Assembly (NCBI GenBank): GCA_002269645.1
Contig: NIVC01001503.1
Location: 124,001-188,000 of the forward strand
DNA from: Macrostomum lignano
Taxonomy: Eukaryota
DNA: 64,000 bases
Direction of reading: 5' to 3'
Both the position numbers and the translations under genes were made by a program. The notes beneath the pieces were generated by a model. That model did not search any database, was not told where the DNA came from, and saw only the letters and a program-made list of their open reading frames with translations. This document shows, piece after piece, positions 43,661-61,543 of the stretch (position 1 is its first letter; each line of letters opens with the position of its first letter).

Positions 43661-43983
43661 ACTCGAGCCGAGCCGCCGTCGCCAATTTAGTTTCATCGTC
43701 AACAGCGAACTCGACAGCTGCCTCAGTCTCGGGGGCCGCAATGGCCGCTGCTCCGACGTCGCCGACGTCGACACCAGTGTTGACGCCGACGCCGACCCCG
43801 GCGCCGGCGCCGATTTCGACTCCAATGGCCTCCGTCGGGTGCGCCGTCGCTCCCGTGCATCATCAGCGCCCGCTGGTGGCTTTGCTAGACGGACGCGATT
43901 GCAGCGTCGAGATGCCGCTGCTGAAGGATCACGCAACGGTGGCCTTCTGCGATGCTCAGACCGTGGCCGAAGTTCACGAGAAG
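43661..43983 (+). CDS. CtBP: THAP-CtBP exon 3 (linker and start of substrate-binding domain)
   Basis: TTGCAG acceptor in the required phase (43655 also possible); [31 protein letters not shown]...HEK; donor AAG|GT, phase 0. Confidence 0.9.
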
Positions 43984-44685
43984 GTGTGTGATTCGAAATT
44001 TTCAGTACTATCACCAGTACTAATACTAGTTCTCCGTTTTTCAACGCACGGATGCCAAGATTCAAGACAACAGCCTTCAAGACCGAACGTCTTGATGTTC
44101 AACTCAGATTTACCAATTAGGTGCCTACTCTGCCGAATGCGTTTGTCTGCATCGAATCCGATTAATTTCTCAGATCTGCCGTCATTCACGAAGCATCGGA
44201 ACCTTGGACGGTCCACCTGCTTCACTTGCCTCAATAATGGCACCGAAAGACGCAAGGCTTCAGAAAACTTTTTTTATTATTTTATTTTCAAAAGCCAGAA
44301 CCGCTTCCTGGACCGAGCTGACTGGGATTTCCTTTGCTAGCCCTTCGGATGGGGCAGCCAGATGCCCGAGCTGATGCCAGCCCGCGGCGCACTGAGGGCC
44401 GTATTAGGGGCAGGTTGAATAGCCCCTGCCGACATGCGGGCGGCTCACCAACCATTCTTTGCCGAACCCCGGCTGCTCTGGTCGGAGCAGGAGGAGGAGG
44501 TGGAGGAAGTGCCTACAAATCTTATCTCCCACCGGGAGCAAGCCGCAGTGCAGGCCTAAGGATGGAGAGAGGGGCCACTCTCTGCCGAGAGTCGCAGCTG
44601 CATCCGGTCGCCAGGCCGTGGCAGCGCAGCTTCCAGGGGGCTTTTCTGCCTCTCTACTCCCACTATGCTCTCCGCCGACTTTCAG

Positions 44686-44830
44686 GTGCTCAACGAGGCC
44701 GTGGCCGCTCTAATGTGGTCGTCAATTCACCTGGGCCGAGAGGAGCTAGCCCAGTTCAGGCAGCTCAAACTGCTTGTGCAGATTGGTCCCGGAAGCGAGA
44801 ATATTGATTTGGCGGCTGCCCGCAGTCTCG
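44686..44830 (+). CDS. CtBP: THAP-CtBP exon 4
   Basis: TTTCAG|VLNEAVAALMWSSIHLGREELAQFRQLKLLVQIGPGSENIDLAAARSL g|GTGAGT; missed by the ORF track. Confidence 0.92.
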
Positions 44831-45169
44831 GTGAGTTCCGGTGAATGCTTTAAAGAGGGCCCCGGGCTTCTTGGCTGCTGCTCACCGCCAGCCGCCCACC
44901 AGCGTCCTCTTGGGCTGCGCCGCCTTCCTGGATGGGAGGGCCAGTCAGTCGGGGCAAACTTCGCTAGCTACTCATCGTTCTACTAATAGAAGCCGTTCTG
45001 GACTAAAAAACGCGGAGAAACCGCTTTAGCATGTCCGGGGCGAGGACGGGAGGCAACCTCTTTTGCTGATGGCTCCGCCGGACTCTTGACTCGACTCAAA
45101 AACGGGGGGATGAGGGCGGGGTTGGCCACTGGTTTTTCTTTAACTTAGTTACCCCAAGTCATTCTACCC

Positions 45170-45432
45170 TCCGGTCATTCCCTTGATAGAGCGGCGCTAC
45201 CCTCCAGTCATTCCCTTGATAGAGCGGCGCTACCCTCCAGTCATTCCCTTGATAGAGCGGCGCTACCCTCCAGTCATTCCCTTGATAGAGCGGCGCTACC
45301 CTCCAGTCATTCCCTTGATAGAGCGGCGCTACCCTCCAGTCATTCTCTTGATAGAGCGGCGCTACCCTCCGCTCATTCTCTTGATAGAGCGGCGCCACCC
45401 TCCGGTCATTCCCTTGATAGAGCGGTGCTACC
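45170..45432. repeat. 33-bp minisatellite CATTCCCTTGATAGAGCGGCGCTACCCTCCAGT (intron 4)
   Basis: Read directly. Confidence 0.95.
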
Positions 45433-46074
45433 CTCTTTCTTTAGATGAAGCTTCGCTACCCTTCGATCCTTCGATGAGCCAAGGTGGAGCCTCTCCTACT
45501 GAGAATTCCTGTCCCCATCATTGCTTTGGCTATCCTAAAAACGAACCAAAGATCTGGTCCCGGTTTTGACCGCATATTTCATTTCCTCCGAGCTACTCCT
45601 GCCAGTTCCCTTGGCTCCCATCTTTTTTTGTATCCCTGCAGCCAGCAGAAGTCTCTGCCCCACCCACCCCCCACCGAGTTGCCGAGGGAGTGGCAGGCTA
45701 GAGGCAAGGCCTCTGTGACACCGGTAGTGAGCCGCTAGCATCTCTCTATCCGACTCTGCAACCCCGGCCACCCCTCCAGCTTCTTTTCTTGGGTCTTTCT
45801 TTTCTCGTCATTCGTCTCATCTGTTTCTGGTGCGTCTGCAGCTGCAACACACACCGGCACCTGACTAATTAGGCCAAAGGTGGCTTGGTGGAAGGCGAAG
45901 CCCCCGGGGGCGGCTGGGGAACTCGCGGGCTCGAGAAAGCTTTTGGGAGAAGAGCGGAGAGGAAGCGAAAAAAGGAGCCGAGCTGAGGGGATTTTGGAGG
46001 ATTTGTAGGAAAAGAAAAGTAACCAAATACAGTTCCAGCCATCTCTCCACCGACTCAGGTGTATGCTCATGGAC

Positions 46075-60075: not shown

Positions 60076-60117
60076 TGAAGCCTATAGCATTTCTGGCACT
60101 TAATTCTTTCTTCTCAG

Positions 60118-60345
60118 GCCGAGTCGGCACCGCTGTGGCCATCCGAGCTCGGGCTTTTGGCTTCCAGGTTGTGGTGTTCGATCCAAACCTGGCCGAAGGC
60201 GTCGAGAGCTCGTTCGGCGTCGGCAGGGCCGGCAGCATTGAGGAGCTGGTGGCGGCCAGCGACTGCGTGAGTTTGCACTGCCCGGATGGGCCGGGCACTC
60301 GCAGACTCATCAGCGAGCAGGCGATTCGATGCGCCAAAAAGACAG
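60118..60345 (+). CDS. CtBP: THAP-CtBP exon 6 (NAD-binding domain)
   Basis: TTCTCAG|(G)RVGTAVAIRARAFGFQVVVFDP...SDCVSLHC...KKT g|GTGAGT; completes GFGRVG. Confidence 0.93.
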
Positions 60346-60467
60346 GTGAGTGTTGAAACTAAACAGGAATGTTGTCAATCAGTCCAGGAGAAGAGCCTAT
60401 GTTGCAGCAGAGTTTATTGACCAATTTATTCCAACGCTATCTCCGTGGTTGCCCGTGGTCTCCGCAG

Positions 60468-60599
60468 GCTTCTTTCTGGTGAACACCTGCTCCGCCGCGC
60501 TGATGGACGAGGCCGCAGTGGCCGACGCCCTACGCGACGGTATTGTCCGCGGCCTTGCGCTCGACCTGCCCAACCGCTGCGCCATTGACGTTGAGAATG
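60468..60599 (+). CDS. CtBP: THAP-CtBP exon 7
   Basis: CCGCAG|(G)FFLVNTCSAALMDEAAVADALRDGIVRGLALDLPNRCAIDVEN g|GTGAGC. Confidence 0.92.
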
Positions 60600-61120
60600 G
60601 TGAGCTGCTCATAAAGTCACCTGCTCTAGCATGATTTATGATTATATTATTGGGTCAGATACCCAAAATGGTTATGCAAAACTTTTATAATTAATCATGT
60701 CAATCGTGCTTCTTAGAATACGAAGTAGCTGTGTGAGTTTATTTATTATTTTAGACTTTTTCCATAATTAGGCTATACTAAACACAAATGACAATTGCCT
60801 ACTAACGAAAGTAGCCAGAAAAGAATGCAAAGCGAATCTCTTTAATAGTGTGGGCAAAAAGATTTAGCATTTTTAGCACTAAAATTGCCAGAAGCTCTTG
60901 TGAATTTTTAACTGGAGCAAAGGTGTATTGTCAGGTGAAAATCACTCGCAGCACGCACACGCTCACGCAGGGTGTACAGCGGCTCTGACTTCTCACTGTC
61001 AGGCATGTTCGCCTCTGTGCCTTTGGGAGTTGGCCCTCATGGGCGGGAGCTACAGGTCCTGGGCCAATTTACTTGTCCATGTCCGACAACACCTCTCCCC
61101 TCTGCTCCCCGCTACCGCAG

Positions 61121-61543
61121 GCGCCCTGAAGGACTGCCCGAACGTGGTGGCCACCCCGGGCTCGGCCTTCTACAGCGACCAGGCCTGCGCCGAGCTGCGC
61201 GAGCTGGCGGCAGAGGAGATCCGGCGCGGATTGGCCGGCCGCCTGCCGGACAGTCTGAAATTCTGCGTCAACTCGGAGCCGGCCGCCATTGCCTGTCCGG
61301 CCAAGCGGCCTCGGACAGCCGGTCAGGCGCGCTTTGCCACGGCGACTGCCTCGACCGCCTCCTCATCATCCGGAGCGTCGTCCAGCACCGGAGGCAGCAT
61401 CGGCCGGGGCGGCGGCTGCACCAGCGGCGACTTTCTTCACCAGGCAGCCAAACGGGCTGCCGCGGCGGCGGCCGCAGCTTCCTGCCTGTCGAAGCCGGTG
61501 CCGCCACCAGGCTTCGGGGCGCCGCCGATCCGACTGAACTTTG
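61121..61543 (+). CDS. CtBP: THAP-CtBP exon 8 (end of core, disordered tail)
   Basis: CCGCAG|(G)ALKDCPNVVATPGSAFYSDQA...EEIRRGLAGRLPDSLKFCVN...PAKRPR...RLNF g|GTGAGT. Confidence 0.92.

Follow-up and report, generated by a model that had tools for sequence, protein, structure and literature searches.

A THAP-CtBP gene of Macrostomum lignano with a replaced dehydrogenase active site and retained corepressor and NAD(H) residues: a probable pseudo-enzyme

The THAP-CtBPs, which carry a THAP domain on a CtBP core, were defined from Caenorhabditis elegans (Nicholas et al. 2008, cited in 10.1101/2020.06.09.143248 and PMC9907507), where the THAP cysteines are reported to be required in vivo (bioRxiv 10.1101/2020.06.09.143248). 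Within the CtBP core, His315 is described as the acid/base catalyst, Glu295 as tuning His315, Arg266 as polarizing the 2-oxo group and R97 as holding the carboxylate (PMC5536941). The R266/E295/H315 triad has been described as conserved in all bilaterians but nematodes, which lost one residue, in a survey of CtBP evolution whose described flatworm sampling took in parasitic and triclad species and not Macrostomum (PMC9907507). Here, we examined a THAP-CtBP gene of the flatworm Macrostomum lignano in a window of 64,000 nucleotides (positions 124,001 to 188,000 of contig NIVC01001503.1, assembly GCA_002269645.1), which is the whole stretch of DNA analyzed and to which all M. lignano coordinates below refer. 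From N- to C-terminus, the encoded protein comprises a C2CH THAP domain, a CtBP core and a tail rich in Ala and Pro. In its core the whole triad and the accompanying substrate residues are replaced, whereas the PXDLS cleft and the residues for binding nicotinamide adenine dinucleotide, NAD(H), are kept. Based on the sequence and the predicted structure, we consider it likely that selection has maintained this protein as a THAP-tethered corepressor that is catalytically dead but probably still binds NAD(H). Of the features that define CtBP, the predicted fold, the PXDLS-cleft residues and the Rossmann motif are present and the triad is not. Because the catalytic residues of active D-2-hydroxyacid dehydrogenases and the carboxylate-binding R97 are all replaced, we have not filed the protein as an enzyme, and its sequence would place it among the THAP-CtBPs as a pseudo-enzyme of the CtBP family and not as a dehydrogenase.

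The nematode THAP-CtBPs, such as C. elegans CTBP-1a, resemble the M. lignano protein in their N-terminal C2CH THAP domain (58-72% identical), PXDLS cleft, NAD-binding core and derived long tail. They are also alike in divergence, with 57-59% identity to canonical CtBPs compared to 55% for M. lignano, and with a similar regional pattern of conservation. Many nematode triads are eroded in our alignment (in R/E/H order, E/I/R in C. bovis, S/E/N in Strongyloides and D/N/Q in Globodera); Trichuris and Pristionchus, unlike M. lignano, keep R-E-H. The M. lignano protein differs in that the whole triad plus R97, S100 and H77 are replaced, and it has only 3-10 derived states in common with the nematode proteins. 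Its triad loss thus appears, from these alignments, to be an independent parallel of the nematode phenomenon and more complete than in print. Nematode THAP-CtBPs with triad loss were already known; what is new here is that a spiralian THAP-CtBP has had its entire catalytic pocket replaced.

The best sequence and structure matches are the canonical animal CtBP1, CtBP2 and dCtBP (53-55% identity), which have the cleft, the Rossmann motif, D204, D290 and the dimer arginines in common with the M. lignano protein. Compared to these, it lacks the triad, the substrate residues and the LNEHNHH loop, carries a THAP domain and ends in a tail unrelated to the conserved C-terminal motifs of protostome CtBPs. 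THAP-CtBPs of Lamellibrachia, Glandiceps, Anneissia, Acanthaster and Branchiostoma bear the same THAP domain on a CtBP core, but in the four that were aligned (all except Acanthaster) R-E-H is intact and the core is canonical. The initial annotation had offered plant ANGUSTIFOLIA as the precedent. This CtBP-like protein is indeed described as lacking the catalytic residues (PMC9907507), but it is ~30% identical to animal CtBPs, has cytoplasmic roles and no THAP domain, and is not orthologous to animal CtBP. With a resemblance only in the absent triad, it is a far more remote parallel than the nematode THAP-CtBPs, which the initial annotation had overlooked.

Gene structure and family assignment

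The coding sequence spans window positions 39678-62257 on the + strand, in nine exons totaling 2007 nucleotides and encoding 668 residues. The gene had previously been placed at 43661-61543; the intact nine-exon frame, the consistent phases and the 668-residue product of that proposal were all reproduced, but the interval proved too short at both ends. A tblastn search with a human CtBP1 query, whose numbering of R266, E295 and H315 agrees with the literature, identified six collinear + strand segments covering CtBP residues 25-354, each present as a single copy in the window (E 1e-6 to 5e-18). Reading the exon boundaries gave canonical AG/GT sites and consistent phases at all junctions. Exons 1-5 are 100% identical to UniProt A0A1I8IUV3, a M. 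lignano 'THAP-type domain-containing protein'.

The THAP domain is encoded by two exons. Exon 1 (39678..39836, residues 1-53) contains the start codon and the first half of the domain with C5 and C10, is supported by A0A1I8IUV3 and a Pfam THAP match (E 1e-8), and ends at a GT donor. The following intron, after ...TIVSQ (after 39836), interrupts the domain at the same place as in Schistosoma mansoni. Exon 2 (42623..42866, residues 54-135), also matched by A0A1I8IUV3, contains the second half with C57 and H60, followed by a basic RRAKRAK motif and a Ser-rich linker. The zinc ligands are spaced C5-x4-C10-x46-C57-x2-H60, and the domain is of the CtBP-specific type (MPTTCGFPNCKFRSRY...), with 58-84% identity to those of THAP-CtBPs from nematodes, flatworms, echinoderms, a hemichordate and amphioxus. 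The splice phases fit a junction of THAP domain and CtBP core, and A0A1I8IUV3, itself a predicted model, joins both as well.

The first half of the CtBP core is encoded by exons 3-5. Exon 3 (43661..43983) contains the linker and the N-terminal, PXDLS-cleft region (...ATVAFCDAQ...HEK), as seen with tblastn and A0A1I8IUV3, with the codon equivalent to A52 at 43942-43944. An in-frame Met162 in this exon (ATG at 43741) is a possible THAP-less start. Exon 4 (44686..44830) encodes VLNEAV with the V66 equivalent, MWSSI and VQIGPG, and is supported by tblastn, phmmer and the MAFFT panel; it contains the H77S (44719-44721), R97Q (44779-44781) and S100P (44788-44790) codons. Exon 5 (49259..49468, tblastn) encodes VEETADST, LNLYRK of the dimer helix, RIRG and the opening G-F-G of the Rossmann motif, ends in phase 1, and is the last exon in common with A0A1I8IUV3.

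The second half of the core begins 10.6 kb past exon 5, across an intron full of minisatellites. Exon 6 (60118..60345, tblastn) completes the motif as GFG/RVG and continues with FDP (D204, 60180-60182), LHC (H236/C237) and a DGPGTRR loop in place of LNEHNHH. Exon 7 (60468..60599), supported by phmmer and the alignment, encodes NTCSAA (A265C; R266S at 60491-60493), ALD (D290) and LPNRCA (E295C at 60578-60580). Exon 8 (61121..61543), found with both tblastn and phmmer, encodes TPGSAFYS (H315G at 61159-61161; F at 318), the C-terminal helix, a KRPR motif and an Ala/Ser/Pro-rich tail. Exon 9 (62115..62257) completes the tail (GYVDSLPQ...GKKDILI) and ends with a TGA stop; its AG acceptor is in phase, the resulting coding sequence is divisible by three, and an AATAAA lies 3′ of it at 62595. 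It is the least certain part of the model, with no homolog support and a minisatellite-filled intron before it. Long minisatellite arrays with periods of 9-65 bp and lengths of up to 2 kb each pack the 49469-60117 intron and other introns, examples being 46074-47668, 48704-49223, 54678-55729, 56414-58467, 59389-60053 and 61563-62039, and they give rise to many spurious long open reading frames on both strands.

The family assignment is consistent across methods. Pfam identifies THAP (E 1e-8), 2-Hacid_dh (PF00389, E 4e-18) and 2-Hacid_dh_C (PF02826, E 2e-32). Among all PDB chains searched with phmmer, CtBP1/2 chains (1hku, 2ome) rank first at E 2e-112, compared to 1e-28 for the next dehydrogenase family. 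Structure prediction, proposed earlier as a check, returned a confident CtBP fold: the AlphaFold2 core has a mean predicted local distance difference test (pLDDT) score of 88.2 and a predicted template modeling (pTM) score of 0.83, and the top 20 Foldseek matches in the PDB are all CtBP1/2 (TM 0.80-0.88). The 130-residue tail is Ala/Ser/Pro-rich, falls below pLDDT 50 at its start and has no similarity to the conserved C-terminal domain blocks of protostome CtBPs; flatworm C-terminal domains are described as Pro/poly-Ala-rich and divergent (PMC9907507). When the THAP domain plus tail was used as a query, THAP relatives were found and the tail had no match.

Replaced and retained residues

Residue states were referenced to the MAFFT panel and 107 triad-intact bilaterian CtBPs. 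Both this reference and phmmer alignments to PDB chains confirm the six active-site replacements initially proposed, namely R266S (TCC), E295C (TGC), H315G (GGC), R97Q, S100P and H77S. At the level of motifs, canonical LVNTARGG has become LVNTCSAA, ALDVHESEPFSFSQGPLKD has become ALDLPNRCAIDVENGALKD with its length unchanged, TPHAAWYS has become TPGSAFYS, VRIGSG has become VQIGPG, and the LNEHNHH loop has become DGPGTRR. Each triad codon differs at 2-3 bases from every codon for Arg, Glu or His, and a single-base error is therefore excluded. Sequencing errors as the source of the substitutions were rejected, given that 2-3 base changes would be needed for each and that a paralog shares S266 and G315. 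Two other differences do not stand as special changes: F318, which had been read as an altered tetramer residue, and W76 are usual in protostomes (fly, limpet, Lingula and others in the panel), and altered tetramerization through W318F was rejected on this ground. The former active site also contains two new cysteines, A265C (60488-60490), which is kept in the paralog, and E295C (60578-60580).

The features expected to serve corepression and NAD(H) binding are still present, as the initial annotation had proposed for the PXDLS cleft, GFGRVG, the FDP aspartate, LNLYR and RIRG, all of which were found in the alignment. Both PXDLS-cleft residues, A52 and V66, are retained, along with G181/G183/G186, D204, H236, C237, T264, D290, R141, R171, R184 and G210. 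In the Rossmann motif, GFGRVG is followed by exactly 17 residues and then D, as in the GxGxxG(17x)D definition of the NAD(H) motif (PMC5536941). The LNLYR and RIRG motifs are present.

Shown directly are the structure of the gene, the residues it encodes and the fold predicted for its core, and we infer an expressed protein that would bind NAD(H) and partner proteins and be inactive as a dehydrogenase. By homology to C. elegans CTBP-1a, the THAP C2CH zinc finger would tether the protein to specific DNA sites. The retained residues and predicted fold suggest that the core folds as a CtBP, probably binds NAD(H) and dimerizes via the conserved interface, and the conserved N-terminal cleft would recruit PXDLS-motif partners and chromatin modifiers. 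Hydride transfer would be impossible with His, Glu, Arg and R97/S100/H77 changed to G, C, S and Q, P, S, respectively; this loss of activity is deduced because the replaced residues have established catalytic or substrate roles (PMC5536941). The catalytic loss would be old, preceding the split from a 60%-identical paralog, with the derived state maintained since. The initial proposal of a catalytically dead, possibly NAD(H)-sensing THAP-CtBP is thus supported at the level of sequence and structure prediction, with cleft and Rossmann motif kept and the triad gone.

Maintenance, decay and alternative readings

Several lines of evidence bear on whether this gene is maintained. Overall identity to the canonical consensus is 55%, compared to 93% for the fly protein, but the divergence is unevenly distributed: the N-terminal/PXDLS region (26-70) is 82% identical and the Rossmann segment 65%, while the active-site-building segments (71-113, 239-262 and 292-312) are the least conserved at 29-49%. 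Such unevenness, at the sequence level, is the pattern expected of a scaffold without catalysis. In addition, a second M. lignano protein, A0A1I8H0E2, is ~60% identical and carries NTCSVS and TPGSAFFS. At canonical-invariant positions, defined as at least 97% invariant in canonical CtBPs (n=192), the two proteins have 27 derived states in common, including C265, S266 and G315, whereas the other divergent CtBP lineages examined have only 3-10 in common with the window protein. The loss of the triad therefore predates the separation of the two paralogs, and the new states were retained afterwards; position 295 is Ser in the paralog and Cys in the window protein. Finally, in a substitution-only simulation of neutral drift on the core coding sequence, in which indels were not counted, 8% of runs were stop-free at 76% amino acid identity and 0.7% at 58%. 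The patterned conservation, the paralog states, the drift simulation and the confident fold together favor a maintained, folded protein. This agrees with the earlier suggestion of selection rather than decay, which had been argued from the intact nine-exon frame.

A number of observations weigh against a maintained NAD(H)-binding corepressor. Exons 6-9 and the exon 5-6 junction are known from genomic sequence alone, and A0A1I8IUV3 departs after exon 5 to other, non-homologous 3′ exons (49946-50035 and 51775-51933). No match above 53% identity to the C-terminal half, which contains the triad exons, was found among 5.8 billion proteins; the index also missed the known M. lignano paralog, and this lack therefore carries little weight. 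At the residue level, Y206N, A265C and the loss of R266 and H315 may weaken NAD(H) binding, and R142K and L215F touch oligomer-interface positions. Moreover, 57-58 of the 192 canonical-invariant positions (~30%) are changed. Given that the divergence is found everywhere, part of the active-site change could reflect general relaxation. The A0A1I8H0E2 model is garbled over ~45 residues, and this copy may be damaged or mis-assembled.

The first of these observations raises the possibility of a truncated product, in which the mRNA ends soon after exon 5, encoding the THAP domain and the substrate-binding half, and exons 6-9 are a separate or unused remnant. The public model supports this by proceeding from exon 5 to exons at ~49.97 and 51.8 kb, intron 5 would otherwise have to span 10.6 kb, and C. 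elegans data suggest partial activity of the THAP part alone. However, the public 3′ exons lie in unconserved intronic sequence, are without homologs and split the GxGxxG motif in two (GF/A...), while exon 6 picks up GFG/RVG in the right phase, all remaining CtBP segments occur downstream of it in order and as single copies, and the paralog model is continuous through the exon 5-6 point. Given this in-phase continuation of the motif in exon 6, we regard the 3′ end of A0A1I8IUV3 as probably a prediction error, and we consider a truncated product unlikely. A second public fragment model, A0A1I8I8H0 (P0299), follows another frame in the region that precedes the CtBP-coding portion of exon 3 and runs into intron 4.

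It is somewhat less probable still that the gene is a decaying duplicate, a non-functional or silenced CtBP that drifts neutrally, its role being filled by an intact CtBP at another locus. The changed fraction of canonical-invariant positions, the lack of any transcript-derived protein matching the C-terminal half, the minisatellite-swollen introns in a duplicate-rich genome and the partly garbled paralog model would all fit such a history. It is difficult to reconcile with a 2-kb open reading frame that is intact across nine exons with canonical splice sites, given that drift to such divergence is rarely stop-free, or with the difference between the cleft region and the active-site loops, the 27 derived states kept in common with the paralog, and the confident predicted fold. 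As for an intact CtBP elsewhere in M. lignano, the only hint is a transcript with CTBP2 as its best human homolog, listed beside CDK1, BRCA1 and UHRF1 in a Gene Ontology-enrichment gene list (Grudniewska et al. 2016, PMC5173321, Figure 1-source data 3). Some CtBP homolog is therefore expressed, although the tables as given do not tell which list or which paralog is concerned.

Least probable is a pocket repurposed for new chemistry or a new ligand, such as a thiol-based redox or metabolite sensor acting via C265 and C295 near the nicotinamide site, because despite the two introduced cysteines (NTCSAA, PNRCA), the conservation of C265 in the paralog and the retained surrounding NAD-binding residues, the paralog has Ser at position 295, no part of the protein is less conserved than the pocket loops, and such a change is without precedent.

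Relatives, neighboring sequences and significance

CtBP-type THAP domains of Schistosoma, Paragonimus, Hymenolepis, Taenia, Spirometra, Dibothriocephalus and Cichlidogyrus are 74-84% identical to that of M. lignano, and the S. mansoni domain has its intron at the same position, as noted above. In these genera, the THAP domain is attached to or adjoins a very degenerate 2-Hacid_dh_C remnant. The neodermatan cores (Schistosoma Smp_150100, Hymenolepis, Taenia, Spirometra and Paragonimus) are far more degenerate than that of M. lignano, with 22-28% identity to the window protein, the cleft residues lost and a Rossmann motif in only some. In Schistosoma mansoni NC_031498.1 (2589556-2617657), Smp_150100 (10001-18102) comprises the THAP domain and a faint remnant of a CtBP N-terminus, and ~7 kb downstream on the same strand lies a separate gene model (24952-28102) with a weak 2-Hacid_dh_C match; annotation has probably divided a single THAP-CtBP-like gene into these two models.

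The neodermatan genes may be orthologues of the M. lignano gene, or they may represent a separate old paralog alongside canonical flatworm CtBP, of which S. japonicum FN318924.1 and E. granulosus XM_024493547.1 are examples. The derived states that the neodermatan THAP-CtBP-like genes have in common with the window protein show no excess above background (4-9), and orthology is therefore unproven. One tentative scenario, which we hold as possible but doubtful, is that a flatworm THAP-tethered CtBP lineage sheds its dehydrogenase functions stepwise, with M. lignano at the least-eroded living stage, where catalysis has gone and the NAD(H) site, dimer interface and PXDLS cleft are intact, and neodermatans (Schistosoma, tapeworms) at late stages, where little beyond the THAP domain and fragments of the NAD domain is left. 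If so, these genes would form a natural series showing the order in which CtBP functions are dispensable. A metagenome scan for close relatives of the window protein returned only bacterial 2-hydroxyacid dehydrogenases at no more than 45% identity.

Triad changes were also observed in other animal CtBPs. The springtails Orchesella dallaii and O. cincta possess divergent CtBP paralogs (P0257, P0269, P0273 and P0275) beside a canonical one (P0010), with triads of N/K/H, D/N/R, D/D/G and D/-/K and with some Rossmann motifs degraded too. Judged by these residues, the springtail paralogs appear to be a third independent case of CtBP pseudo-enzymes, of which we found no description. Among otherwise canonical-looking CtBPs from transcript and metagenome assemblies, H315N was observed in P0023, P0048, P0065, P0066, P0069 and P0093, R266G in P0074 and R266N in P0091, while P0242 reads Q/D/H and P0243 reads S/N/R. 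The triad-less P0243 is from Logan assemblies of SRR6291331 and SRR6291294, whose adjacent run numbers are those of vertebrate metatranscriptomes with known parasite content. Given these single and multiple changes, conservation of the triad in animals seems less absolute than published. The initial statement that the triad is normally conserved in animal CtBPs agrees with the published account (PMC9907507), from which the multi-residue losses in several nematodes and the changes listed here depart.

Elsewhere in the window, a ~7-kb C/T-rich tandem array with extreme AT and GC skew occupies 790-7720 and is open in several + strand frames, which yields spurious open reading frames of up to 1703 residues. 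An intact-looking Tc1/Sleeping-Beauty-type transposase open reading frame with HTH_SB, HTH_Tnp_Tc3_2 and DDE_3 domains lies at 19204-20478 (+), and a weaker mariner-like transposase fragment lies at 27325-28116 (+). On the - strand, 24547-25020 encodes an HMGB-like protein with two HMG boxes (Pfam E 2e-33) and an apparently cut 3′ end, so that this frame could be a single exon within a longer gene, and 8189-8626 encodes an OXLD1-like protein that matches the Oxidored-like N-terminal domain (PF09791, E 5.5e-9).

The need for CtBP dehydrogenase chemistry in vivo is an old question, as mammalian cell assays are described as indicating that it is dispensable and fly genetics as indicating that active-site residues matter (PMC9907507, PMC5536941). 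In this context, M. lignano provides a second animal lineage, independent of the nematodes, in which the whole triad and the substrate residues have been removed, and its protein qualifies the published claim of triad conservation in every bilaterian group other than nematodes. RNA interference and transgenesis are established in M. lignano (PMC5730564), and reverting or further mutating the pocket residues is therefore feasible. Should M. lignano be without any intact CtBP, it would be an animal that runs CtBP corepression without dehydrogenase chemistry. As read from its sequence, the M. lignano gene would represent a natural experiment in which the selected function appears to be scaffolding together with NAD(H) binding, rather than catalysis.

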